Shown here: positions 1 to 16,565 of the stretch, one piece after another
Layout of the letters: each line of letters begins with the position of its first letter
Numbering within the stretch: the first letter of the stretch is position 1
Source: Marsupella aquatica
Taxonomy: Eukaryota > Plantae > Marchantiophyta
Length of the DNA: 16,565 nucleotides
NCBI GenBank assembly: GCA_973895155.1
Contig: CCZZQB010000057.1
Location: 1 to 16,565 of the forward strand
Direction: 5' to 3'
Translations under genes and position numbers: made by a program
The notes under the pieces: generated by a model
The model's database searches: none
Seen by the model: the letters and a program-made list of their open reading frames with translations, nothing else
What the model was told of the DNA's origin: nothing

Positions 1-295
1 ATGAAACAAAGCATCATATAAGCAGATCCTACATAAAACATTCATAAGAATTAAACACAATCACAATCTTGCTAAAAAATGAAGATCATTTGAATTCCAA
101 TGGAATAGTTTACAATGTGATCAATGTAATTTAGACAAAACAGGAACTCATAATTGATGACTGTAGGATGAGATAACTGAAAGCACATGCATGATACTAT
201 GAATCTCCAAGAGGACATGATTCTTGTACTGTTTCTTGACATCTAAAATCTACATAACATGACTCACACTACAAACAAATAATGGCATGACATTG

Positions 296-3200
296 TTATG
301 GATCCTCTATGAACTTGCTTGGCCATAATACCAAAGAACCTGCAGCATCTCCAAGTGTCTTTTGAGGAGGATCATCATTTGTGTTTGGAATGGGAAGGAC
401 AGCTTTAGGTTTCACTAGTAATGTGACTAACACTACTGAATAACCTGGGGGAATCCTCTTGCCATGGAACGTTGTGGAACCAACCTGCACTCTGGCAAAT
501 CCTACTCGTGTTCCACTCTCATCAACAGCTAACAAGCCACTTTGTCCCTCAGCATTAGGTGCTTTCCCCACTTCCACCTTAGATCTTTCTGCCAGCACTG
601 TTCTTGGAGGTTTGTATGAAACCTTTGACGTGGCTCTGCTCCCACCAGCAGACTTGCTTCGTGTGCGCATGCTTCCTCTCTTCACAGTAGTGAAGCTAGG
701 CTCAGTAGGTTCCTCTGTTAGGACTGTCACAGTAGCAGGTTCATCACCTGGGAGTGTCATACCAACTAACTCTTTGGTTGGATTTATCTCAACAAGAGGC
801 ACACCTGTCATTGAGAATGATACATTCTGCAAATCATTTATCTCTGCAATGGAGTCAAGATCTACATAGCATGAATCTGGCTCAATGGTATCATTGTCAT
901 GCTTGCTGATATCCTCATTTGCCCCAACATTGATATCATCCACTCCCTTGCCAATGTCATCCTCATCCAAACATGGTTGACTGCCCTCTGTCAAACAAGT
1001 TGCTTGTACAGACTGCAACTTTGTTGCCTCTAAATTACAGCGAGTATTTGCCAGGTTCTCATACTTCTTCTCTGTAGCACCTGTCTTATTCTCTATGGAC
1101 ACAACAACCACAATATATGTTACTGAAAATAACACATTCAACAAACAATGTCAATTCAAACTATACATTTAATAATCATATCCCACACAGTTGTAAAGGC
1201 CTTACCTTCAAGCCTACATGTCGTTGGCATGCCAGAAGAGTGCATCGACTTTGCCACCTCAAGTGGTGATGGTGGAACTCCTGCAGAATTGGAATCAATT
1301 TTATCTCTCACCGACACAACAGCTTCCATTAATGTCTTGAAGTTCACATGGAACAAGTCAGTCAATGAATTCAAACGTTCATTGATCTCTGGAAGACATG
1401 TTTCGACAGCCTTCAAACGACCACTTATCTCTGTAAGTGAAGATCCACCTCCCTACATGACACAGGGGTATAGGTTCAATCACTCCATATGAAATGTTGG
1501 GCAATATATGCACAATCAATGTTATATACAGTGTACACCTGAAATTCAACGCAGGTCATTCAATTACCAATCAGAACTCATATAACTTACATGCTTGGAG
1601 GATTCAGATGCACCCTCTTGAGCCCGGGTGTTCACAATTTCAGCCCTCAACTCTTCTTTTGAAGGGCTTTGCCCCAATTGGGCTTTCTGCACATGCATGG
1701 CAAACACAAGTTATCGATCAATATTCAGGGAACGTACACTAAAAAACAAAGTTTACATGTAGGGACAGTACACTAAAAAATAGTACATAGTGTAGCATAA
1801 ATTACATAGCTAGGCCATTCATTCTTACCAAACGTTTAGCTGTCGGTGCAGTGCCGGTCCTTCCTGTCAGATTAGGGTTCTGAACACTCAACCTGGCCTC
1901 GGTCATCTGTGAACTCTTCTTTTTTGAAGCATCTGTTACAAAATAAGCTACTAACCTTGCCCACACTTTATCATCACAACTGGCTGGTGGAGGCATATCT
2001 GGCTTCTCCCCACCTTCCTTCCAAGCCTTATGCATTCTCCACCTCTCTTGCTTGATAATTTTACCTGCTGTACTCTCTAGGCAACCTATGTCCACGCCAT
2101 CATCACTGCCCACATAATTCCATTTGGCAGCAACATTTTCACATACAGTCTTCCAATCTTTTGGATGCTGTTTTTTAAAATTAATAACACTCACATCTAA
2201 CCAACGCAATACTTCAGCTTTCAAATCAGCATGCCATCGGTTCTTGCGAGGACACTCAGCATCCACCCATTGTCTCTCATTCAACTTTACGTTCCCTTTC
2301 TTTGTCACCTCCCCTCGTGCACTGCTCTCGGTAGTACTGGGCGTTGTATTGGCCACCCCTTCATTCACCCTACCTGGGGTTCTGAAGCCACCTGGGAAAA
2401 TACAATGCCATTCATGCTTGAGAACTACATATAGCAGAATGGATGACGGCAACATTCAATGCTTCACTTCAAGAAAAATTCTTCAAACATACATACCTGT
2501 AGCTCTGCCTGTAGATGCCTGTGCAGGGACTGCACTCTGAAATTGTTGCGACCCTGGACCACCTGTCCAGCCTAGTACAGGGGCCGGATGATGTCACTTT
2601 CTAGGTATGTGTGTGCAAACATATGTACTGAAAACTAAGTACAAACTGTAGGAAAACAACTGAACATTCACCGACATACCTGTCCCCCTTCCGTGCTGCA
2701 TCTGCATAGGGGCATTAGTGAATACTTGAGTCGATGGTTCGACTGTCCAACCTGCACACATACATTTTCTATCATTATACATGTGCAGAGTCCCCCCCAC
2801 GTGAATGGACTCCACATATAATGAGTTCTTCCATTGCTGACAAGATCAGACATTACCTGCTCCTCTTCCAGCGTTTGTAGGTACTGAATTTTGATATCCC
2901 TGCCAATTACCTTCACCACCTTCCCAACCTTGTTCATTCCACGACCCACCACCATCCTCCCAACCTGGTTCAACCCATGTCTGTCCTTGTGGACATTGGA
3001 ACTGATCATTACTAGCATTTGCCCAATCAGGTTGGGCAGAATCTGCATGCAATGGCAGGTGGACAGAATTTCATGTTGTCTGAATCCAATACATCCCAAA
3101 CAATGTCAAAAATTGATATGCAGTCTGAAATTCAGGAGTGCCATGCCTTCACAAAGAACTGGCATATAGATATATACTCACATCCCCACGGTTGAGGTGG

Positions 3201-4003
3201 ACGTCCATACCCACGAGATTGTGGGTTTGGACCTGCTCTGCCTCTACCACGGGCATAACCTAGAGCTTGCCCCCTGCCATAGTATTGGGCACCAGCCTGG
3301 GATCTACCACTACTACCACCTCGCCAACCTTGATCAGAGGTCAGCCCCCCCTGCTGGTATGGTGCATGCACAGGCTTCGAAGGCAAAACAGAACTGGCAG
3401 GACGCTGCATCACATCACCAACTACAATGTCAGGAACTAAGCAAGGTACATATGTGTAGTACTGAACATATGAAACCTCTAAACAAGAGTTTTTAACTCA
3501 AAACCTTGTTGGGAAAACTACTTACATGTTTCTTTTGGGGCTGCTCTGCAATGTATTCATCTTCATAACCCCCATCCTCATCCATTTCCTCTGGAAAATA
3601 CTCATCATCTGCATCTTCTTGTCTAGTGTCTGCACCCACCTGTGCAGCATCAATGTCATCTCCACATTCTGCCATTGTAGGTACGACCTTCTTGCTCAAC
3701 CTGTCACTCCGACGCACAGGCCCAGAGATAGTGCTGGTCACCCTTCTTGCGTACTCCTTTTGTTTCTTTGAAAATGCTGTGGCTCTGCGACATTCCAATA
3801 TGAGAATACAGTCACAATTTCAGTGCCACATTGAACTATTCATGTCACACAAACTCAGCGGAGGGGTGTAGTTGAGAATCGTTCCCTTACAATTCAGCCA
3901 CATCCTTTTCCAGATCCAGTTCTGCGATTTTGGCTTTCACGTATGCTCGTTGTTCCATAGCTTTCCTTTCATACTCACACATCTCTGTGTCACTCTGTTC
4001 CAT
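296..4003 (-). CDS. CACTA TnpA/TNP1 (Ptta/En/Spm-like) accessory protein, 10 exons: 4003-3891, 3784-3526, 3404-3182, 3042-2857, 2751-2680, 2571-2497, 2391-1829, 1686-1591, 1452-1206, 1092-296 (2631 nt, 876 aa)
   Basis: Nine GT-AG introns (105-139 bp) link ORF-track fragments with matching phases and no internal stop. The N-terminus has a CEYERKAMEQRAYVKAKIAELDL helix typical of CACTA second ORFs. Exon 7 is Ptta/En/Spm-like (WARLVAYF...KKKSSQMTEARLSV..NLTGRTG). The C-terminus is DUF8039-like. The exon 3 acceptor (3405) and the start codon are the least certain parts. Confidence 0.82.
299..535 (-). other. DUF8039-like C-terminal domain of the TnpA/TNP1-like protein
   Basis: Motif VGFARVQ..FHG..IPPGYSVVLV....KAVLPIPN..D....LGDAAGSLVLWP matches the recalled consensus of the CACTA TNP1 C-terminal domain (HG...V.V......LP.P......LGDA.G..V.WP). 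Confidence 0.8.
2497..3404 (-). other. Low-complexity G/Q/W-rich segment (exons 3-6 of the TnpA-like gene) with GW/WG and RG/GRG motifs
   Basis: The spliced translation contains SDQGWRGG, QPWGY, EPGWEDGGGSWNEQGWEGGEGNWQG, GAGWTV and GTGWTGG: six GW/WG dipeptides and ten Trp in about 190 aa. Confidence 0.8.
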
Positions 4004-4159
4004 CCTACTGGACCACAAAAACATGTCATCTATGGTCACCCCGTATAACACAATGCAACCACAATCACCAGGCATCCATCCATACATCTGTGTTGCTTCA
4101 GAATTACTTTATTACACATCCTTCCCCTCACTAATGTCTATGCAAACAATTCACATTAC

Positions 4160-7100
4160 TCATGGCACAGGCACACTGTTGGCATCTGCATCTCTGAATT
4201 CGCCTCCTTCAGCAAATGCATCTACCCTTGTCACAGGAATGAAGTCCCCGCTATCATGAACTACAGGCACTTGGTCTGAACGCCGACGATCAAAGGCACT
4301 ATGAGAGTGTAAATGAAACTCAAGGTTTGATCCTTCCATCCGGCGTTGCCTGGCCTGTTTATGACACACTACACGCCAACCTGGGGAGTCTTCCACATCC
4401 AGGAAGAAAGCTTGCTCCACCTGACTAGGAAACACAAATGGCTCAGACCATTCGGGCAATTTCCCTCTGAAATTGGCCAGCAAGAAACCGTCGTTGTCTC
4501 TCTTCATGGTAGCCCTGTTACCAAGCCAATCCTGCCGCACCCATGAACCTTTCATAAGAATCACAGGACTGGACACCGCCCCATAGTCCAGAGCCCATAT
4601 GTCAACTAATTCTCCCACATATCCCATCTCCATCCAGGCCCTGTCGTGATTGTGGCTCTGTTGCTCAAATACAGTGATGAGCCCGCAGTCATTCGTCACC
4701 CTGTAGGCACTGTCACCATCCTTCACTCGGAAGTGATTCCCATATGCTCTCATCCGTTTGTAAGTCTTCACTTTCAGGCTAGGGGCATTAGACAGTAGGT
4801 AAACATCTGCATCCATGTCTGGGTGGGTCTCGTGATGCTCTCTAATTGCCACTCTGATCCACTCCATGAAACCTGGAAAAGTTGTTCCTGCAGTGGGATG
4901 GGCCGCCTTCAATGACTCATACTCCCTGAACGAACAACCACACAGCATTAGCTTGGGTAAACATGAACAGGCTGAAGGAGAAAACCACACGAACACAACA
5001 TTTAAGCTCATGAACTGGATTATAGCACATGTATGCACTCACTGTATCCAGGGTTCCATCACCACAGTGTTGTGCAATACAAAGTCATGTGCCAAGTCTC
5101 TCATAGATATGGTCAGGTTCTTTGTGGTTGCAGCCCCTTCCAGTACTTCACCTACCACCCCTTCCTCCTCATCAGAATTCCACACCCTGGTCTTCACATG
5201 CTCATATTGTGCTATGTATTCGGTCAGAAATCCCAGAGTCTCATCCTTGATGTAACCTTTAGCCATGCTTGCTTCAGGTTTGTAATATGTTCTCACGTGA
5301 CCTTTGAGTAGCTTCATGTACCGTTCCAAAGGGTACAACCAACGAGCACTCACAGGCCCAAATTGGTGTAGCTCTTCCACAACATGGACAAGTAGGTGGG
5401 TCATGACATCAAAAAATGCGGGAGGAAAATAAATCTCCAGGTCACACAGCACCTGAGCGACATCTTCTGTCAGTTGTGGGAAGTGTGTTTCATCCCAAAC
5501 CTTCACACAAATACGACGAAACACATCACTGAGTCGCATGATCACAGTACGAACAGGCTTCTGCAACAGGCCCCTCAGGCATAAAGGCAACACCTGTTGC
5601 ATCAACATATGGTAGTCATGGCTTTTCATACTACCAAGCTTTCTAGTCATGATATGCTTCTTGAAAGCACTGCCATAGTTTGAAGGAACCTTCAAAGAAC
5701 TCAACCTCTGCACAAATAGTTCCCACTCTGTGTCTGTCAGAACATAGGGCGCTTGGTACTTCAAGAGCACATCAGCTCTGTGGGCATGTGGCCTCAACCA
5801 AAGATGGGGTTTCATTCCCCTCTGTTCAAGATCCAATCTCACTGAACCAGTGTCTTTCTCTCCACACAAGAATCTGAGTAGACTCTCACAAATATTCTTT
5901 TCAATGTGCATAACATCAATGTTATGTTTGCTTGGCTCAAACTCCTGCATCGTTGCAATGCAAAAGCGTCAGGAAATGCCTCAAGTTTAGTCTCTCTCTT
6001 CGAAATGAATGCACATGCTCTGAACCAAAACATGTATCCCAATTAGCATCAACTCCAAGAGGCTTACCCTCCAGTACTTGAGCTCCAAGTCCAATATGCT
6101 CAGTCTTTTTACACCATATCGCTTTATTGGATCACTCACTCCATCTTCCCTGCCCCCTCGTTTGATATAGTCATCCCTCAGTGCTCCCCACTGCCTGATC
6201 TCCTCTTTGGTCACTCGTGCCGGGGGTCCACGTTGCTCAATCTCATTGCCAAAGTGTGCAATCAGTGCCTGTCTTTCTCTGTAAGGGTGATCTGTCTTCA
6301 GAAAACGACGATGGCCCATGTATATCACTTTCTGCAGGGCTCTGGAGTACTCACTGGTGACATTGCGCCCACAGATAGTACAAGCACAATATCCTTTTGT
6401 TGTTTGGCCTGATATCATCCCATGGGCTGGGTAGTCAGCTATAGTCAGAATGACAATGGCTCTAAGGATGAATGGGTTTAACCTCCCAAGCCTCTGTAGG
6501 ACATCATATGTGAGAACTCCTTCCTCCCAAAGCTTTCTCAATTCCTCCACTAGGGGAGCCAGAAACACATCTATGTTGGCAGATACAGCACTGTCTGGCC
6601 CTGGTATCAGTAGGACCATCAGAACAAAAAATCGCTTTGTAGTCATCCAAGGAGGAAGGTTATAATTCAAAATAGTTACAGGCCAGCATGAAAATTTGTT
6701 GTTCTTGTCTCCAAATGGGTTTACCCCATCCAATGACAGCCCAAGTCTGACATTCCTCGGCTCAGCAGCAAATTCGGGATACATCTCATCTATGAGTTTC
6801 CATTGCCTTGAATCTGCAGCATGTCGTTGTAGCCCATCATCACTTTTCTTGTCAGTTGCCCAAGTCATCATCTCCGAGATGGCACGGCTTCTGAACATCC
6901 GCTGAAGTCTGGGAATGAGTGGAAAATGACGAAGTACCTTGGCGGGAACCATAGACTTTCCTGAGTTCCGATACCTGTGCTTCCCACACTTAGGGCATGT
7001 CAACGATTCTTTATACTCCTTTCTGAAAAGAACATGCCCATCAGGACAGGCATGGATCGAATCATAGTTCAATCCAAGATTAGATATGCATCTTTTTGCC

Positions 7101-7891
7101 TCGTACATGTTCTTGGGCAAAATATTACCATCTGGTAGCACAGTTGTTCGCAAGAATGCCAACAACTCAGAAACCAAAACGTTGGGGACATTGTGGTTGC
7201 CGCAAATGTTCAGGAACATGATGACAAATCCCAGTTTAGAACATTTGCTACCGGGGTACAAAGACTTCCTGCCTTCCTGTATTTGCAGGGGAGAGCCAAA
7301 CATCCCATCATGCCCAGGGGTTTCCTGCCCTATCTCAAACTCATCAAGAGGCTCTTCGACAGGGGGCACACTTGCATCTGCAGCCGTATCCTCTTCATTG
7401 TCCAGCCCATCATGAAATGCATCCAAGTCTTGGAAGATGTCTCTCACCATCTCTTCCACATGAATTCCTTCGTCACGTGGTGCTGCCTGAGCACCATCCC
7501 GTTGGAGAGCTGACAACCCACAGAGACCAGCTACAACATTTTCAAATGCACCAGGCAGAACCTCACTTGCCCGTCTTGCAGCATTGGCAGCATCAAATTC
7601 TAACCTCCACTCCTCGTCGGAAGAATCTTCCTCTGCAGGATCATTCCAAACTCGATGTCGTGGATCTCTTCCATGAACCGCGATATGCCGCCAAACCTCA
7701 TTCAGACCCCTGGTACGGGATCCTTGGCAGATTGCACAAGGACATCTCATCCTACTGGCTCCTGAAAGTCTGGTTCGTAACCTTTCACGCTGCCAAAGCT
7801 TATTATCATGGCGTGATATCCTTGTGGGATGATGCAAAGGCAGTGCCTGTGCCCTGGGCTGGGTCTGGGGAGGGTGGTGACCAGGGTGCAT
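4160..7891 (-). CDS. TNP2: CACTA TNP2/TnpD-type DDE transposase, 3 exons: 7891-6068, 5944-5043, 4925-4160 (3492 nt, 1163 aa)
   Basis: Domain order: N-terminal transposase-associated Zn motif (RMRCPCAIC...RHIAVHG), HACPDGHVLF..CPKC, Transposase_21 core, HNIDVMHIEKN, DUF4218, DUF4216. Intron 6067-5945 (AGG|gtaagc...tgcag|GAG) joins YWR|EFEPSKHNIDVMH in frame. Intron 5042-4926 (CA|gtgagt...ttcag|G) joins PWIQ|EYESL in frame. Putative catalytic D (6728-6730), D (6434-6436), DxxH (5906-5917) and E (5324-5326) are all present. The exact start codon is uncertain. Confidence 0.93.
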
Positions 7892-8020
7892 TGTAACAGG
7901 CTGGGAGCTCTGCAGTCATGGACAGCAGTGAACAAGGATGCCTAATGGTGGTATTTGTGTTCCATATATCCCTGACTGTATCTGCCAAAAGAGTTAACAT
8001 AACGTGTACTAAATTCTCAC

Positions 8021-8029
8021 AAACCCTAA
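8021..8029 (+). promoter_or_regulatory. Telo-box-like motif AAACCCTAA about 130 bp upstream of the transposase start
   Basis: Exact AAACCCTAA match in the 5' region of TNP2. Related ACCCTAAA motifs occur near 11112 and 15604. A short motif like this could occur by chance. Confidence 0.25.
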
Positions 8030-8324
8030 ACCACCCCAAAAGAAAAAAACAGGTTCGCAAGTAGTGTACCTATTGTCAAGTGAATGACACAAAATTTCTA
8101 AATGTTGGAGGGTGTCACCACCTCCTCCGCTGTCCTCAAATGTACCGCCTCTGCATGTACGTTTACAGTGACACCCCCAGGCAGCAGGAAACAACAATCC
8201 GCCAACAATAAAATAAGCCCAACTGCCACCAACCATAACAAGGTACATTAGTTCAAAGATCACATTTATTTCAATGATCTGATTTATACAAAAAAACTTG
8301 TGTCCAAACTGATGCTACTACTCC

Positions 8325-9197
8325 TCACTCTGATTCAGAATCGCTAATGACCCATTCCTCACTTGTTGTCTCATAGTCCTCTCTGTAAGGATCCTGACCC
8401 TTCCGTGGCCAGGCCTCAAAAAGATCATAGTCCATTGGGTTTTGACGCTTCCCAGCTGCTACTGATTCCACAAGCCAAGCATATGAAACCACAAACACAT
8501 TATGGGACATGACATAAAAGCGAATGTCTCCCTTCCCAAACTTGCGGCAGGCTTTGGGATATGACTTAGTAATGACATGAGTGGTGTCCTCTGTTATATT
8601 CTCCTCCACTGTCCCACCTAGGTCAAGCACTGTGGACTTGTACACTTTGCACTTAACCTCTCCAATTCCCGCCTCCACAAATACCATGCTCAGCCCTTTC
8701 AGAATGGGGGTTGGTTGCTTCGTCTCCTCAGCCAACATACTCTTCAGCCTTGTAGAGCTCTGTCCTTTGTTGAGTACAGGTCCATATTGGAGATCAGCAA
8801 GCCGTGCCTTTGCTTCCCAGACTTCTTGTTCAGCCCAAGCTGATGCAGTAGCTTCTTCATCCTCCCACAACTCATATTGCTCAGTATCCTGTACAATCTT
8901 ATGTGCTATGGAATCTGTGATCCAAGAGGCCTCAACTACTTTTAGGCCTTGCTTAGTAATTGCAGAATTCATGTAGGACCATGACCACTTCTTTATCACT
9001 GATAGCCATGTCCCTGCAACAACATGTGTAGTCTCTGGAGTGATGTCCTGAACTACAGTGCCATGGAGCTCAGAGAATCGTTTCTGTACAGTTGGCCAAT
9101 GCACTTTGGTCAACCCATGCTGGCCATGGACCAAAATCGCTCTGACCCCTGTAAACACTGCTGGGTGGTCACACTTTCTACGTTTACCAGGCTCCAT
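8325..9197 (-). CDS. Tandem BRCT-domain protein (290 aa from ATG at 9197); BRCTs resemble the plant DNA polymerase lambda N-terminal BRCT; no polymerase domain
   Basis: Two repeats carry BRCT hallmarks (F/L.G, GG/HG.V, TTHVV/I, W+..S, terminal Y.L): VFTGVRAIL...LHGTVVQDITPETTHVV...SWITDSIAHK...YEL and ILKGLSMVFVEAGI...LGGTVEENITEDTTHVI...KFGK...YAWLVESVAAGKRQNPMDYDL. A basic GKRRK NLS-like motif precedes them. The ORF-track start at 9203 is a GTG. Confidence 0.88.
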   Translation of the reverse strand: MEPGKRRKCDHPAVFTGVRAILVHGQHGLTKVHWPTVQKRFSELHGTVVQDITPETTHVVAGTWLSVIKKWSWSYMNSAITKQGLKVVEASWITDSIAHKIVQDTEQYELWEDEEATASAWAEQEVWEAKARLADLQYGPVLNKGQSSTRLKSMLAEETKQPTPILKGLSMVFVEAGIGEVKCKVYKSTVLDLGGTVEENITEDTTHVITKSYPKACRKFGKGDIRFYVMSHNVFVVSYAWLVESVAAGKRQNPMDYDLFEAWPRKGQDPYREDYETTSEEWVISDSESE

Positions 9198-9790
9198 GTA
9201 CACACACCCTACGTGATGACAGTGAATTTTGGAAGAATGGGTTCACCTGACAATACAAGGACAACAAAATTCCTGCTTTTTGAGTTGATCTGGCCCACTG
9301 GTGCTCAGGTCCGATTTTGATAGGTACAAGGGATATGTCACACAATACGTACTAGGCACCTGCACGGATGCAGGACATTGTTTGAATATATACTACAAAA
9401 TCCATATCCGTGGTGAAATGAAGTGCAACCAACTTGTCATGGCACATACATATTTTGTTGTAAAGGAGGATACATTCAATGACAAACTTATAGGGCAATT
9501 TGATTAATTGCATGCCTGATAATTTATACGCTTACAACTTAGAAGTCCTGTTTTAATTTAGCAGTGTGATGAAAGTGTTTATGAAAATGACCACTCAGCC
9601 TAAATACTTCCAAGAAGGCTTGTAAGGATAAGTTTGTATAGGCATGTACCCAGCCACTGACGCCAGAGCACAAGATAAGTGCTGCCTATATAAACTCGCC
9701 TACCCAACTCCTTTTCAAAATTGGAATCTCTGCAATCTCAAAAAATAGTACATCCACATCAGGTGCACTGTGCATGTACAATGTTCAGCT

Positions 9791-10471
9791 TCACAGCCAA
9801 GATATGTGATCTCTCACAGGAGTGCGCGAGGTAGGATCAATGGCATGGCGATGACAATAAAATATCCATCGATCAACACCATGTGCAGAGTGATCATAGA
9901 TTTCTCTGTCACAAGCATAACCCTCTGCTTGATGATCTTTCAGGCAATGATAGTGCCACATAGTGGGACACCTAGCACAGTGGACTATGTCAGTCCAGTA
10001 GTCATCATCATGCTCACCACATGCCTTGCACCTATGAAGTGGGCAAGCTGTGGCATGAGCAGGCAAACACTCAAAACAGAAAAATCTCACACAAAAACGG
10101 TCTGGACATTTCCTAACATTTGCTGCAGCATCAACAGAGCCCTCATAGGACCCCAACTTCCCACACTGTGCACACTTAGCCTGCTTCTCCAAACAATCAG
10201 TGCACATCCAGTCTCCCTGGTGTGTTGACGGGAGGCCCACCCCTGGACAGTTGTTTTCTGCAGCAAGGTCAGACTCCGGGTTGAGGTGGAAATGCCTCAT
10301 GCAAGGGCCCTCACAAATGACCAGGCCCCCACCATCGTCACAAATGGCACAACAATGAGCTGCCTTCTGGAAAATCTGACTTGCAGAGAAGTTAGTAGCA
10401 TCTGCCCCAAGTACACCTGTGTTTCTCACCTCTGTCACACGCTTTTTGGCTTGAATTTTAGGCCGTGCCAT
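9791..10471 (-). CDS. Stand-alone EDM2-like triple PHD-finger protein (226 aa)
   Basis: CAICDDGGGLVICEGPCMRHFH...C...WMCTDC...CAQCGKLGS...C....C...C..C...CPLHRC..C...CARCP..WH.HCL...IFYCHRHAIDPTSRTPVRDHISW follows the recalled EDM2 PHD block (CAICDNGG...CEGSCLRSFH...CPLHKC...CRRCPKSYH..CL...LIYC.EHEID....TPVRDH). It lacks the EDM2 N-terminal and methyltransferase-like regions. An acceptor-like tgcgcag|G lies just before the ATG. Confidence 0.88.
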   Translation of the reverse strand: MARPKIQAKKRVTEVRNTGVLGADATNFSASQIFQKAAHCCAICDDGGGLVICEGPCMRHFHLNPESDLAAENNCPGVGLPSTHQGDWMCTDCLEKQAKCAQCGKLGSYEGSVDAAANVRKCPDRFCVRFFCFECLPAHATACPLHRCKACGEHDDDYWTDIVHCARCPTMWHYHCLKDHQAEGYACDREIYDHSAHGVDRWIFYCHRHAIDPTSRTPVRDHISWL

Positions 10472-10482
10472 GCCTGCGCATG

Positions 10483-10626
10483 AGATAGACTCTACAATTT
10501 AGCAGACTGCACAGAAAGTAATATATATTTAGCATTTAAGGTACAAAGGCATTTAGATAGACTCTACAATTTAGCAGACTGCACAGAAAGTAAAATATAT
10601 TTAGCATTTAAGGTACAAAGGCATTT
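10483..10626. repeat. Tandem duplication, 2 x 72 bp, one mismatch
   Basis: 10483-10554 and 10555-10626 (agatagactctacaatttagcagactgcacagaaagtaa[t/a]atatatttagcatttaaggtacaaaggcattt). Confidence 0.97.
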
Positions 10627-11241
10627 GCTACTGCAATGAATTGGAATGGCCACACAAGGATGCAGAGCACACATACTTTTGGTATGTTGAGCCCACACAC
10701 AAAACTGATCCCCTAATACAATTTCTCCACCAACACCTCAATTTTAATTGTGGCTATGATTCACCAAAGGAGATCTGCAACAACATTTCATGCATTTGAA
10801 TCACATACAATAGTCGTGACATGTAAAACAGGCATTCTTCGAAGAGGATTGGTATGAAGCAGTGTCATAAGGGTTGAAATTTATACATCCTAAATAGGTT
10901 ATGATAGTGGCTGAGACAAATAAGTGAGGCATAAATCATTTTGCATATTATCACATGGCCCATTAATTCATTCAACGTTGCAATGTTCACCAGGTTAAAG
11001 CAGTCATGAAAGCAGTCTTTCAATAGAGACTTTTATGCGAGTTTGCTAGCCTCTTAAATTAGGATATTTTGCTTAGTGCAGGCATAATAGGATATAAGTT
11101 ATATACTGTTGACCCTAAACCCTGGACCCAAAATTGCTCATACATCAAAATTTTAAGTAAATATCCTCTGTGTTGAAGTCAGAGTGTTAAGCTATAGGTC
11201 AATGGTATCTGGTCTGTGCATGCGGTGTGACAAGTGGTCCT

Positions 11242-11691
11242 CTAGAGCATGTGATCCAAACATGTGTAGACACCAAAGTCACCGGTGGTGGGGTCTGGGA
11301 GGGCAGGACAAGTGACATCACCAGGCACACTGCAGGATGGCGAGTGGTTCCAAATGATACATTGTGCTCTATGCAAAAATCGGCATCCAAGAGAACGGTC
11401 ATCCAATTCTGGGCCAGAAGCCCTACAGGCAGGACAGTCATATTGGCAACTGTGTACACACCCTTGGCACCTAATTTGTGGCGGGTCATGTACAAGAGAC
11501 ACAAATACCAAGGATGTCGGGAAGGGTACTGAAGCAAGTAGAGGCCGGCTGTAGTTGTTCCTGGAAACAACAGGGTACTCAAAGTACCATGCAGACTGGG
11601 CTGGAAGGATCCCAAGTCTGACATACTCAAGGCGCAACATCTCTGCCTTGCGTGCAAGTCGCACATGTTCAGCGTTGCGGGTCCTCACCAT
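11242..11691 (-). CDS. Hypothetical small Cys/His-rich protein (149 aa), possible zinc-binding domain
   Basis: ATG start with a basic MVRTR N-terminus and an in-frame upstream stop. The C-terminal half has 10 Cys and 4 His, including CxxC (CQGC), CxxC (CPAC), HxxxC and CxxH (CLDH). Same strand as the other genes. No family recognised. Confidence 0.45.
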   Translation of the reverse strand: MVRTRNAEHVRLARKAEMLRLEYVRLGILPAQSAWYFEYPVVSRNNYSRPLLASVPFPTSLVFVSLVHDPPQIRCQGCVHSCQYDCPACRASGPELDDRSLGCRFLHRAQCIIWNHSPSCSVPGDVTCPALPDPTTGDFGVYTCLDHML

Positions 11692-12686
11692 AAGTGTTGC
11701 TTTTGTTGTGATGTCCTCTGTTCACGTCCTTTGATGAGCAAGGTGAGCAGGAGGTCGACTTGCCTCGCCAACAGCAACCACCTAAACTAATCAGTTCCCA
11801 CTCAACTACAGGTCATAGTATACACATAGCATGAAACGTGCATAGTACATATTTGATTCTGAGTTTATGAGTTTCCTAAGACAAAGAGCTTGGTGATAAA
11901 CCCATATTCTCGATGGACATGTATATCAATCGTATTAAAATCCTGTTTTTTCATCCAGAAAGACCGAAAGTCTCACCTTGCAGGTTGCAGCAGAGAGAAA
12001 ATTCACTGGTTGTCGTGTTGTGCAAGTGAACCTCCACTGATGCCCCCGGTGTAGCCCCTCAGATGCAGGTGACACTTACCAACTCCCAAGTTGCCTGGTC
12101 TAACAGAAAATGCTTATATCTTCAGAACTTTATAGAGCAAGTACATGATCACATACTTCTGGATCTATTCATATTTGGAACTCTTGCCAACTACAACTCC
12201 CATTATGCACAAGCTCACATCAACAGAGAAAAATACAGAATGCATACTTACTATGGCTCTAAGCACCTTCACTACCTTGTTGAACCCAGTCCTGAAGTCT
12301 TTTCAGCGTGTTTGTTGTGCTGTCTCCTTTGGCACCCAACACCTTAGTCCTTGATGTAACAGAATGCGATTTTACAAGTTAGATGCTTTGGAACCTTCTA
12401 TGGTCTTAGCTGAATTGATGTCATCGTAAGTGGTGAAAGACAAGGAAGACGAAAGCTGGTTGAAGAGCTGTGGACAACACACTAGCATGAAGTGCTTCAA
12501 CCAATCCACTGCCAAACGGAACTCTTACACAGTCACATTCTTTCAGTAAACAGAAACTCAATCAAACTTCATAATCAAAGTACAGACTCTGAAGGACCAA
12601 AGGAGGATGTTGTGAGTTTCTCTGTTGTTTAATGTGTTACCCTTCTAGTTTCGAAGTTAGCAAATGCTGAATAATGTGTCTACCAG

Positions 12687-13026
12687 ATCTTCGAAAAGAA
12701 GCCCACCACAATTAAGAACTTTGGTATCTGGGTGAGGTATCAGAGTTGTACAGGTTATCCCAACATGTACAAGAAATATTGTGATACCACATTAAACAAC
12801 CACACAGCAGATGTATGATGAGATGGCTTCTTGTCATAGAGTTCGGTTCCCTTGCATCCAGATCATCAAGACTACGACAGTCCCTGTCTCTCTGTGCAAG
12901 CGAGAAAGTACCAAGCAGTTCCATGATTCAAAGATCAAGTTCCCCTTGACGTACCGCAAGATTCAACCTCCATCGCGAAAGCTAAAGACGACTTACAAGG
13001 CCACCAAGCCCAACACATTTGTTTGA
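12687..13026 (+). pseudogene. RPL18A: 60S ribosomal protein L18a (eL20) fragment, C-terminal about 113 codons, with a frameshift near 12798-12810
   Basis: Translates as [37 protein letters not shown] / [73 protein letters not shown], clearly plant eL20. There are 13 nt instead of 15 between the N and M codons, giving a frameshift. The N-terminal part is absent. The fragment starts at an acceptor-like taccag|ATC. Confidence 0.93.
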
Positions 13027-13484
13027 GTAGTGCGGGTGTAGGTTCCCAATTTTGAAACAATTTGGCTCATTTTATGTCCCGAGGGACTCCAGGAGTTTAT
13101 GTATTGAGTTTCTAGGTCAAGATGCTTAATATAAGGAAATTCAATTATCACCTCGTTCCCAACTTCTATTAATTGAATATACACAAGCTGGAAGCAAGAA
13201 GACAAGCCACAATCTAGCATCTTAGCCAAACACAATCGTCCCGACAAAGCAAAACTCAGCTGGACAGAAGTCACTCGGATCCACAAAAAATTGAAGATTC
13301 ACCTCCAAGCCGGAGGCCGATCACTTCAGTACAGCAGCTTCTGGACGGAACAAACTCTGCTCAGCCCCACAAAAACACAAATGTTAAGGCTCCAAGTCAG
13401 AGCTCACAAACAGAAACTCAGATAAATAACATTCAAAATCTGTCCAGGTTTGTGCAAAGTGTACATATTCATTCTTCTGGAATG

Positions 13485-13512
13485 AACACGCAATGCATAC
13501 ATCGCCTAGACA
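13485..13512 (+). repeat. 28-bp dispersed repeat, copy 1 (copy 2 at 15610-15637)
   Basis: aacacgcaatgcatacatc[g/a]cctagaca, 27/28 identical; the flanks are unrelated. Confidence 0.85.
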
Positions 13513-14196
13513 CAGTCATTATAAATCATTGGGCAATTGGGGACCACTAAGCAGGTGTGTTCCTATTTCGAGGCTACAAGAAAGGATAGAGTGACACCAA
13601 ACTGAAGAGTACACCAAAAGAAAAACAGCAAGAACCAAAGTCAATCATGTGTGGATATTTTGCACATGGGAAGTTCCCCTGAAGAAGCACCAGTTGCTAA
13701 CATTGTCACCCGAACCACACCCAGTTTATTACCTCAATGTCTTCAGCCTCAATATCCAATCCTCAGCCCCCTGGTGCTTCCGTGTTTGTTCTGAAAATTT
13801 CTGTGATGAAATAATTATTCAATACATTCAATAGCAAAGAGAACTCAATCACAAAAGAAAAATAGTTAGTGTGAATGCTAATTTCTCAACACTTAACTAA
13901 ATTCAAACCACCAATTCAAGTAGTAAGTTTCAAAAACTTGCCTTTACATGAAGAGAAACCAATTGGCCATGCATGTTACTAAAGCAATAAACAAATAATT
14001 AGGCTCAACCCCGGGCTCAACACACAGGCAAACTACTCGAAACATGCTGCTGAGAAGTAACATTTTTTGAATGTCAGACTATGTGTAAGTGCCATGATCG
14101 TGCTCCTACGTTTCACAAGGAGGGCTGGCCCGAAAGGGAGAAGCAACAATGTGGAGTCTATACACGTAGCACAAATCCCAGTTTAGAAGGGTGGAT

Positions 14197-14310
14197 GAAG
14201 TTCAGACAAGAGTTCAGAACTTGCCATTTGAGATTGCCAATCTGAACTTCACATTCAGACAGGACTTCATCCAGTTCAGGAGTTCAGATAGGAGTTCAGA
14301 CAATCTGAAG
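14197..14310. repeat. Cluster of short GTTCAGA/TCTGAAC motifs in direct and inverted orientation
   Basis: GTTCAGA at 14200, 14212, 14282 and 14294; variants at 14253 and 14274; inverted copies at 14241 and 14304. GAAGTTCAGA (14197-14206) and TCTGAACTTC (14241-14250) form a perfect 10-bp inverted pair. Confidence 0.75.
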
Positions 14311-14865
14311 AGGACTTTGGACTTGAATGAGGGACAGCGTGGCCATATAGTTATCCTTGTGGCCTTCAGCTGCGTGTCTCAGGCTGAATTTCACTTTCCA
14401 GTTTCGAGAGTTCTGAAGGTCTAGTTTTAGTAACTTCCTCCTGACTCGACTTGGGAGCATTCTCCCTATTTGCTAGCTTGTAGTTAGCTTTGACTCCTGT
14501 GAGCTTAGTTGACGACCCTCTTGAGATATTAACAATTAGAACAAACACAAGTTGTCAAGACAGATTCCACCGGAGCAAAAAGTCCAAAATCAGGTGAAAG
14601 AAAACCTAAGGAAAGTCCATAAGAACGAAAGTAGGAAGGCAGGTGCACGGGCCACCGAGAAAAGTAAAGGATGCATGTGATTAGTGGGGAGGGATCTTAG
14701 CAAAAATAGGGGAAAGCAAGGGAACTTGCTGCTAAAATCAGCTGAACGATTGCACGGTTCCTATAAATTTAGTGGACCTTAAGGCCGTCTGTTCAGCCCC
14801 CCACCCCATTGCCAGAGCACGGGGCACAAGGCATGTTCTGATACAGGGAGGAGCAAAACAGTCAT

Positions 14866-15087
14866 GTCAAGCAAGAAATGTGGAGAGACCAATCAGTAAG
14901 CAAAAATAGGGGAGAACATACATACATGATCAGCAGCAGCAGGAAACAAGAAAGATGATTTTGGGTGGCATCTTAGGGTCGGGGACACCACTGCAACACC
15001 GGGACTTAGGATATGAGTTGTTCTTAATCTGCTAGTAGCATCCGGCAGGCCGGCGACCCATGGCAAAAGGGCAGAGCAACAATCCGC
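14866..15087 (+). repeat. About 220-bp direct repeat, copy A
   Basis: Aligns by eye with 15693-15911 at roughly 85-90% identity (gtcaagcaagaa...gagagaccaatcagtaagcaaaaatagggga...caacaccgggacttaggatatga...aatccgc). Confidence 0.95.
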
Positions 15088-15609
15088 TAAAACTACCGAG
15101 TCTCACCTTTGCGCTACTGACTGTCACCTTTGTCCAAGGTAGCTAGTAATAGCAAGTTGAAGTCCCGCTCCAAGTTGTCGGCTTCCACTCCAAGCTCCCT
15201 AAAAGATTGTGGCCTCAGGTCCAAGTCGTTAGCTCGCACGCGCAACTCCCTAAACCTACACACAGCGGAAGCTTAGCTCACCAACAACTTGCAGAAACAA
15301 TGACCTCCCCTCTGAAACTGATAAAAACACCTGAATACAAATAGTGAAGCACGAGGACAGAACAGGGAGAAGCGTTTTGCAGTTTGGGACGACAATGCTA
15401 GGAGTGTATACACTTCGGGCAACAGGGAGGTCCAATAATAGTTTGAATCTGACGGATGAAGCTCTAGGCGAATGAGCTCCAGGAGATTGGGTGCATGATT
15501 GAGTAGGCAATTGTAACAGCAGGCACCTGGCGATTGAAGGAAGCAGCATTCGGCAATGGACCTAGGCAGCTCGCGAATTTTGCTCAGCAGCGATGTCACC
15601 TAGACCCTA

Positions 15610-15637
15610 AACACGCAATGCATACATCACCTAGACA
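15610..15637 (+). repeat. 28-bp dispersed repeat, copy 2
   Basis: Matches 13485-13512 with one mismatch. Confidence 0.85.
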
Positions 15638-15692
15638 ACTATACTTGCAGCCACGAGGTGAGTCCGCGATAGGGGATTGAAGGAAGCAGCAA

Positions 15693-15911
15693 GTCAAGCA
15701 AGAAGCGTGGAGAGACCAATCAGTAAGCAAAAATAGGGGAGAATAGACATACATCAGCAGCAGCAGGAAACAAGAAAGATGATACTCTGTTCCATCTTAG
15801 AGTCGGGGACACTACTGCAACACCGGGACTTAGGATATGACTTGTTTTTAAACTGGAGATAGCATCCAGCAGGCCGGCGACCCATGCCAAAAGGGCAGAG
15901 CAGCAATCCGC
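15693..15911 (+). repeat. About 220-bp direct repeat, copy B
   Basis: Matches 14866-15087; the copies start 827 bp apart. Confidence 0.95.
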
Positions 15912-16565
15912 CATGTAGCGATAGGCGAGAGCAGCGATTACGACGATGAAAGATGGTCAAAGCTGAAGCAAAACCCCTAAAGATGCAGCTTGGCCATACT
16001 CTCTTTCCTCACCTCATAGCGCTAGGCATTCAACCTCCCTCTTCAATGAACCTCACAACAGCTTGAAGGTCGATAGATTTTACCTCGTCTCCTGAGCAGA
16101 AACGTCTGCATTAGCTAAACAGAGCCCGGAACAGAGCTATCGCATTTAGCCTCCCGACTCCAAAATTGAACGCAACACAACCTCCAACTCCCAATGGCAG
16201 CTCAGTAGGTTGATCAGCTCGGTCAATGCAGGTCAGTCGACCTCAATAGCCACACTAGAAGCTCACCGCAAGTCACTCAAAGGTCAGACTAGAAGCTCCG
16301 CCGCCTTCACACCGTAGCAAAAAACAATGAGACCAATATCGAGCAAGGCGACCCTGTTTGAATATTTGGCGACCATCAGGCTCCACCCCTCCTTTCTCGC
16401 TACCGTTCCCCCATGTGATGGTTAAGCTTCTGAGGACACAATCAATCGCACAAATGTAGCTTAAAGCAGGACCTCACTAAGCAGACTATCGGTTAGGACC
16501 TTATAGACATAGAGATAGATAGGTCAATGCAACCTTACTTGGGCCGATGCAGCATGTCTCTTCAC

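Follow-up and report, generated by a model that had tools for sequence, protein, structure and literature searches.

Argonaute (AGO) platforms have been described in the C-terminal domain of NRPE1, in SPT5L/KTF1 and in GW182/TNRC6, where a disordered, Gly-rich and hydrophobe-poor chain carries reiterated Trp residues, many of them as Gly-Trp or Trp-Gly dipeptides (GW/WG). Two viral proteins, P38 of turnip crinkle virus (TCV) and P1 of SPMMV (sweet potato mild mottle virus), carry a few GW/WG motifs, which are reportedly conserved and are said to have proved necessary when mutated. A different kind of protein, TnpA, is encoded by CACTA transposons: Arabidopsis TnpA binds motif clusters at the Spm termini, activates transcription and causes local hypomethylation that requires ROS1/DML2/DML3 (10.64898/2026.08.24.746577). 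Disordered linkers and exon junctions commonly border the DNA-binding domains of Spm, and TnpA-like proteins appear, according to the same survey, to be confined to flowering plants (10.64898/2026.08.24.746577). Here we analyze a 16,565-nt stretch of the liverwort Marsupella aquatica (contig CCZZQB010000057.1, assembly GCA_973895155.1, positions 1 to 16,565; hereafter the window), whose minus strand carries what is, by homology, a CACTA/EnSpm transposon with a TnpA-like accessory gene. Between positions 3404 and 2497, this gene is predicted to encode a Trp- and Gly-rich segment for which an Argonaute-hook function had been proposed (hereafter the original prediction). Our analysis instead points, with moderate confidence, to a fast-evolving, disordered effector or linker region of the TnpA-like protein that bears RG, acidic and Trp patches, and not to a dedicated, conserved Argonaute platform.

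The segment shares several properties with the platforms of NRPE1, SPT5L and GW182, in that it is made of degenerate repeats, evolves fast, and passes a composition score derived from such proteins. It differs from them in having six GW/WG motifs where they have 17 to more than 40, in an excess of Tyr, Gln, Pro and Arg, in an AGO binding that is only putative, and in its score of 38.5 half-bits, whereas NRPE1, SPT5L and GTB1 exceed 150 (PMC2910046). Furthermore, all NRPE1 orthologues keep their platform (PMC4476159), while that of the segment is not kept in its homologues. As in TCV P38 and SPMMV P1, the analogy drawn in the original prediction, a parasite-encoded protein is involved whose few GW/WG motifs could dock on AGO; here, however, the motifs lie in a low-complexity region, are mostly lineage-specific and are known from sequence alone. 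Maize En/Spm TnpA and the Arabidopsis TnpA of Spm1/Spm3 resemble the window gene as accessory proteins of the Transposase_24 family encoded with a CACTA transposase, and in having a folded domain flanked by disordered linkers and exon junctions. A GW platform has not been reported for the characterized TnpA proteins, and the family of the window gene comes from liverwort-like genomes.

A TnpA-like gene with a Trp- and Gly-rich segment

The conserved folded domain of the window gene is encoded by exon F (2391-1829 (-)), which holds the start of a Transposase_24 match. Taken alone, exon F scores 22.3 bits against the Pfam family Transposase_24, below the cut-off of 28.7, because introns split the domain; in spliced form, the homologues P0127 and P0133 reach 32.2 and 30.9 bits, above the gathering cut-off. 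Sequence identity over exon F is 48.6% to the family member P0122, 40% to P0127 and 35% to P0133. A profile built from exon F and two relatives retrieved 204 family members from 1.84 billion representatives, and the nearest named relatives are liverworts, namely Calypogeia fissa (P0127, CAM6101639.1) and Riccia sorocarpa (P0133, P0139). Neither a metagenome scan with exon F nor one with the exon F profile yielded a confirmed locus. The homology to Transposase_24, together with a position downstream of the transposase on the same strand, therefore identifies a TnpA-like accessory gene. This bears out the assignment made in the original prediction, as a transposase with Transposase_21, DUF4218 and DUF4216 domains lies upstream and the Transposase_24-type domain downstream. 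The two liverwort proteins above the Transposase_24 cut-off lie outside the flowering plants to which the survey confined TnpA-like proteins, and the locus documents, for CACTA elements of liverworts, TnpA-like accessory genes whose exon architecture is conserved.

For comparison we used four related elements or genes (L001, L003, L005 and L006) and an annotated Calypogeia gene (L004; C. fissa CBCUJL010000017.1, 2351064-2373345). Across these loci, exon A (acidic), exon F (the domain exon), the transposase and a C-terminal exon are conserved. The C. fissa gene is laid out as an acidic exon, a G/Y/R-rich exon, a 24-residue exon beginning P-I-W-G, a domain exon and helical exons. An AlphaFold2 model of P0127, computed from a 48-sequence alignment, gives residues 1-241 a predicted local distance difference test (pLDDT) value below 50 and the domain a value above 95, and shows long helices at residues 419-502; a Foldseek search of this model against the PDB found no match at E<=0.001. 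No transposase lies in the 10 kb flanking P0127 on each side, and its neighbor is an acyltransferase gene. P0127 may be a TnpA-like gene that is solo, non-autonomous or domesticated. In L003, an in-frame stop (10603-10605) interrupts the conserved domain at the Trp position of the LRWLD motif of the window, and a run of N lies at about 10310-10420, so L003 is a degraded or gapped copy.

Minus-strand reading frames and an explicit splice model recovered the segment at 2497-3404 and its proposed division over four exons, which correspond to exons B to E. Exon A (3798-3526 (-)), with homologous exons in L001, L003 and L004, encodes a basic stretch followed by a strongly acidic block and ends at the donor CAT|GTAAGT. 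Exon B (3404-3182 (-)) encodes a basic, RG-rich block with a GW at the beginning and PPQPWG at the 3' end, where the exon stops in phase 1 before GTGAGT. Exon C (3042-2857 (-)) encodes the Trp-dense acidic core, with 6 Trp in 62 residues, and contains the peptide quoted in the original prediction. Exons D (2751-2680 (-)) and E (2571-2497 (-)) encode 24 and 25 residues, are both of phase 1-1, and begin G|WTVEP and G|WTGGP, respectively. Exon F ends at the donor TTG|GTAAGA at 1828. The five introns (3525-3405, 3181-3043, 2856-2752, 2679-2572 and 2496-2392, all (-)) are 105-139 nt long and all follow the GT..AG rule. The A/B junction is in phase 0 and the B/C, C/D, D/E and E/F junctions are in phase 1, running exactly into the frame of exon F, and the G+C fraction is 0.36-0.42 in the introns compared with 0.46-0.58 in the exons.

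An acceptor for exon B at 3436 was rejected as out of frame with exon A, while that at 3404 is in frame; a second candidate acceptor, likewise in phase 0 and lying some 50 nt upstream of 3404, would leave the Trp and GW/WG counts unchanged. We also rejected an alternative frame of 145 codons over 3105-2671, which had only non-syntenic or very weak matches. Within exon A, a conserved 'MAE' start codon lies at 3675-3673 (-), and the frame stays open upstream of it to a stop at 3822-3820, with no ATG in this frame of the window. This upstream frame (3676-3819 (-)) is conserved in relatives, with a ...RRSDRL... motif (about 4019-4150 in L001, 9893-10000 in L004), and in Calypogeia it includes 36 residues ahead of the annotated ATG. 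The TnpA-like gene probably has a further exon upstream or is alternatively spliced with the transposase transcript, as happens in maize En/Spm. At the other end, the C-terminal exon (299-1150 (-)) closes with a conserved region of about 75 residues, 49% identical to L003. This region (12345-12572 in L003, 1402-1578 in a further locus, L002) has a weak match to Pfam DUF8039 in relatives and forms a second conserved module.

Spliced together, exons B to E encode 186 residues, where about 190 had been estimated, and the earlier counts of ten Trp residues and six GW/WG dipeptides were reproduced. Gly makes up 20% of the segment (19.9%) and Gln 12%, while Ile, Leu, Val, Phe, Met and Cys together amount to 8.6%, in agreement with the hydrophobe-poor context described before; the mean hydropathy is -1.08. 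Trp accounts for 5.4% of residues, compared with 1.35% in the equivalent N-terminal and linker regions of 47 family members (8,280 residues), and six GW/WG dipeptides compare with 0.4 expected per 186 residues at the family level. Measured against the composition of the segment itself, six is not unusual (shuffle mean 4.0, P=0.19), because about 20% of the segment is Gly. The GW/WG pairing emphasized in the original prediction is thus a matter of Gly content.

Charge is arranged in blocks along the protein, from a basic start through the acidic block, the RG block and the Trp/acidic core to the neutral duplicated exons with Q/G/S/T repeats. In the charge profile, the acidic block of exon A reaches a net charge of -12 per 30 residues and contains Tyr and Phe. 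The RG block of exon B has 8 Arg, 14 Gly and 4 Tyr in 51 residues, and the core of exon C includes a 29-residue stretch with 5 Trp, 6 Asp or Glu, 9 Gly and no Lys or Arg. From the pLDDT values below 50 in the equivalent region of P0127 and from its own composition, the segment is predicted to be intrinsically disordered.

Two other classes of protein resemble the segment in these respects. RGG/RG-motif regions are defined as clustered RG/RGG repeats within a Gly-rich disordered region; with 15 RG/GR dipeptides, a single RGG and an RGRGR run that lies in exon B, the segment is a di-RG cluster and not a tri-RGG box. It shares with Gly-rich/RGG RNA-binding proteins an RG-rich block beside GW dipeptides and a near-equal hook score (38.9 for Arabidopsis RGGA), but these are cellular proteins, whereas the segment belongs to a transposon protein that has a folded domain and a coiled coil of its own, and it contains a single RGG. 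In acidic/aromatic activation domains, acidic residues keep aromatic ones exposed. The acidic block with its Tyr and Phe, and the core with 5 Trp and 6 acidic residues free of Lys and Arg, fit this picture, although the Gly content of the core is high for a typical activation domain and the likeness comes from composition alone. TnpA itself is a transcriptional regulator (10.64898/2026.08.24.746577).

Conservation among relatives and internal duplications

Searches of the related loci with exons B to E detected nothing at E<=0.01 (tblastn), and relaxing the threshold to E<=20 gave weak syntenic matches only, including one between exon B and the RG exon of L005 (E=0.036) and another of exon B to L001. 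Smith-Waterman scores were marginal at best relative to composition-matched shuffles, with z=3.6 for the same pair of exons. For exon C, no homologue was found in the related loci and no candidate relative among 5.8 billion proteins. The linkers of the relatives are G/R/Y/Q-rich and of low complexity, with 1-3% Trp and 0-2 GW/WG dipeptides per piece, and their composition varies: that of P0128 is G/Q-rich and free of Trp, while that of Calypogeia carries a 24-residue G/Y/R/H repeat.

Only three Trp-anchored motifs recur in the relatives. PPxxWG, at the 3' end of the RG exon, is present in the window, L001 and L003, with variants in L006 and Calypogeia; the L001 exon ends in RQWG and shares with exon B of the window a phase-1 GTRAGT donor placed one base downstream of the Gly codon. 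The window, L005 and L001 share the motif [W/F]EDG, and GWT or DWT is found in the window (twice), L005, L001 and Calypogeia P0127. In addition, the 24-residue small exon of the Calypogeia gene model lies at the position equivalent to exon D. Judged by these sequence comparisons, the GW platform is not a family trait, and the Trp conservation among family copies that was to accompany a hook is largely missing, as the relatives have 1-3% Trp and 0-2 GW/WG in each linker piece and stay below 25 in score.

In the wider family (P0133-P0224), linker Trp residues stand in a hydrophobic motif, W-x-x-[VIL]-P or TW[VI]PGH[YF], in the disordered region upstream of the conserved domain (for example PPGWTLVPIPP, YTWVQVP and GQWQFIP), and 31 of the 112 family linker Trp residues have a Pro at +4. 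This family-wide W-x-x-[VIL]-P motif is not hook-like; its core resembles an aromatic-x-x-aliphatic docking motif.

Part of the Trp content of the segment stems from internal duplication. Exon C contains two copies of a 36-nt tandem unit (2914-2941 and 2950-2977, together 2914..2977 (-)), which encode the 12-residue units GWEDGGGSWNEQ and GWEGGEGNWQGY; the copies are 82% identical and spaced 36 nt apart. This duplication came from a repeat search other than Tandem Repeats Finder, which reported only a 9-nt period in the region. Exons D and E (24 and 25 residues) are duplicates in the same phase, and both begin G|WT. Direct repeats at their exon/intron borders, spaced 183 nt at the donor borders (repeat D3) and 271 nt for a second repeat (D5), indicate that introns were copied too. 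At least 3 of the 10 Trp residues derive from internal duplications. In the two diverged copies of the 12-residue unit both Trp codons were kept, in a sample too small for significance.

Argonaute-hook scores and competing readings

For the hook score (dos), we re-implemented a published composition matrix and algorithm for WG/GW domains, with a threshold of 6.99 half-bits and a 'medium' class of 25-150 (PMC2910046). The matrix is biased towards Gly, Ser, Trp, Asn and Asp and against Leu, Ile, Met, Tyr, Cys, His and Phe. One domain of 86 residues (residues 144-229 of the spliced product) scored 38.5 half-bits and falls in the 'medium' class, and two flanking domains scored 17-19. Shuffled versions of the segment reached a mean best score of 30.2, with 20% of them attaining 38.5. 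The hook-predictor check suggested in the original prediction is thus passed at the 'medium' level, but shuffled sequences score nearly as high. In our re-implementation, 18% of family proteins pass 6.99, and none of 150 relatives scores above 25. The 'medium' class itself includes Gly-rich and RGG-type proteins that its authors flag as possible false positives, with Arabidopsis RGGA at 38.9 (PMC2910046).

In composition, the segment correlates with the reference hook set at r=0.72, with similar frequencies of Trp (5.4% vs 6.3%) and Gly (19.9% vs 21.3%). Tyr (3.8%), Gln, Pro and Arg, which are either disfavored by the hook matrix or neutral in it, are in excess, while Ser, Asn, Asp and Lys are short. 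GW/WG residues form 6.5% of the segment; in NRPE1 platforms, they form 2.5-10% (PMC4476159). Liverworts themselves possess an NRPE1 with a WG/GW platform, and AGO platforms evolve without alignable conservation (PMC4476159).

If the segment were a functional Argonaute hook, it would bind the Trp pockets of AGO, and the DNA-bound TnpA-like protein might titrate, block or redirect AGO loaded with small interfering RNA (siRNA), as viral GW-mimic suppressors do. We consider this unlikely. The location, splicing logic and hook-like composition invoked in the original prediction all hold: ten Trp and six GW/WG in 186 residues, with a GW/WG share inside the NRPE1 range, Trp and Gly frequencies near those of reference hooks, and a score above the threshold, are found in a disordered context that is built from repeat units, as in NRPE1, in a lineage whose own NRPE1 has such a platform. 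A WG ending the RG exon also recurs in relatives. What does not hold is conservation of the platform in relatives, none of which exceeds 25 half-bits or carries more than two GW/WG per linker piece. Moreover, the hook-like Trp residues are the newest ones, whereas the conserved Trp residues adjoin Val, Thr or Pro; Tyr is strongly disfavored by the hook matrix, and the excess of Gln, Pro and Arg and the shortage of Ser, Asn, Asp and Lys point the same way. The GW pairing is not above that expected from composition, shuffles score almost equally, and the score class reached is the one that holds flagged Gly-rich/RGG proteins. No transposon-encoded AGO hook turned up in our literature searches, and the only route described by experiment for the anti-silencing effect of TnpA, in Arabidopsis, runs through the host DNA glycosylases ROS1/DML2/DML3 and not through AGO (10.64898/2026.08.24.746577). 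A more specific version, in which a liverwort CACTA transposon would recently have built a genuine AGO-binding GW platform into its sequence-specific TnpA-like regulator by duplicating an exon and a 12-residue unit, and in which this protein, as the first transposon-encoded AGO hook, would tether or titrate AGO loaded with siRNA at the termini of the element, appears distinctly improbable. If true, it would be the DNA-transposon counterpart of viral GW mimicry, an element's own hook into the small-RNA silencing machinery of its host, and would give direct access to the way elements in an early-diverging land plant evade RNA-directed DNA methylation. Should the segment be no AGO hook, then composition-based GW predictors fire on Gly-rich disordered linkers grown by duplication.

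At the opposite extreme, the segment could be a neutral low-complexity spacer that needs only flexibility and a rough length, its Trp excess having arisen by chance when replication slippage and exon duplication multiplied units that bore TGG. The duplicated 36-nt unit and the duplicated exon D/E, the lack of alignable conservation in exon C, and the wide differences in linker composition among relatives such as P0128 and Calypogeia would all fit. We nevertheless judge a purely neutral spacer to be improbable, since relatives whose folded domains share only about 35-45% identity still have three Trp-anchored motifs and an intron position in common; the retention of both Trp codons in the two diverged 12-residue copies, in a sample too small for significance, tends in the same direction. 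It is very unlikely that the segment is not translated as proposed, with mispredicted exons, another reading frame, or an intronic or untranslated stretch leaving no GW peptide at all. The 145-codon frame does overlap 3105-2671, the A/B junction has two possible acceptors, and the N-terminus is ambiguous; yet five canonical GT..AG introns with mutually compatible phases land in the conserved frame of exon F, exons exceed introns in G+C content, the Calypogeia gene model shows a matching arrangement of exons, and the RG exon and the position of its WG and donor are common to L001 and L005, while the overlapping frame has only non-syntenic or very weak matches.

Between these alternatives, we favor a fast-evolving disordered effector or linker arm. 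Several points weigh against it. The Trp density of 5.4% is four times the family level, more than a merely neutral linker requires, and the core, with 5 Trp, 6 Asp or Glu, 9 Gly and no Lys or Arg in 29 residues, resembles experimentally proven hooks. AGO binding is also compatible with the observed lack of conservation, because platforms evolve without alignable conservation (PMC4476159). Lastly, the alignments of recurrent motifs were anchored on hand-picked motifs, and they describe a pattern and do not test it.

In the favored reading, the segment would form a variable arm between two conserved parts, the acidic block at the N-terminus and the folded domain with its coiled coil. It would have evolved fast through duplication of small symmetric exons and of the 12-residue unit, and duplication in a background of 20% Gly would have given rise to the dense GW appearance in this lineage. 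The Trp-anchored motifs that were kept (PPxxWG, [W/F]EDG and GWT) are likely functional contacts. As to binding partners and an effect on silencing, we infer a flexible, multivalent docking or effector arm that may act through aromatic, Arg and acidic 'stickers', promoting self-association of the DNA-bound protein at the element ends, recruitment of host factors, or both. Such a role would be expected of a transcriptional and anti-silencing regulator of the TnpA type.

Host element and neighboring genes

The transposase gene (4160..7891 (-)), upstream of the TnpA-like gene and on the same strand, comprises three open reading frames (ORFs) at 7891-5987, 5950-5039 and 5038-4160 (-), which match Transposase_21, DUF4218 and DUF4216, respectively (Pfam E=2.1e-70, 4.7e-28 and 1.2e-4). 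Among 935 transposase homologues, the closest, found in environmental and read-archive assemblies, reach 56-70% identity; identity to angiosperm proteins is about 37-41%. Candidate element termini of the form CACTAC..AAACAAAT were found at 267-282 (+) (CACTACAAACAAAT) and 13017-13032 (-) (CACTACTCAAACAAAT), with about 14 nt in common. The triplets adjoining them differ (TCA vs CGG), so that no target-site duplication backs these candidates, and the left one lies only about 30 nt past the stop of the last TnpA-like exon. A long inverted repeat was looked for at the element, and none was found.

Directly upstream of the transposase and on the same strand lie an ORF with tandem BRCT domains (8325-9203 (-); Pfam BRCT, E=2e-13) and an ORF with an NSD-like PHD finger (9791-10471 (-)). 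The order PHD-BRCT-transposase is common to the window and L003, where the corresponding ORFs are at 2381-3043 and 3620-4384, with amino acid identities of 38% and 27%. This arrangement suggests that the CACTA family may carry a third, chromatin-reader-like gene. The remainder of the window (10500-16565) contains ORFs at 11199-11691 and elsewhere, and its GC and AT skew shift near 14.5 kb.

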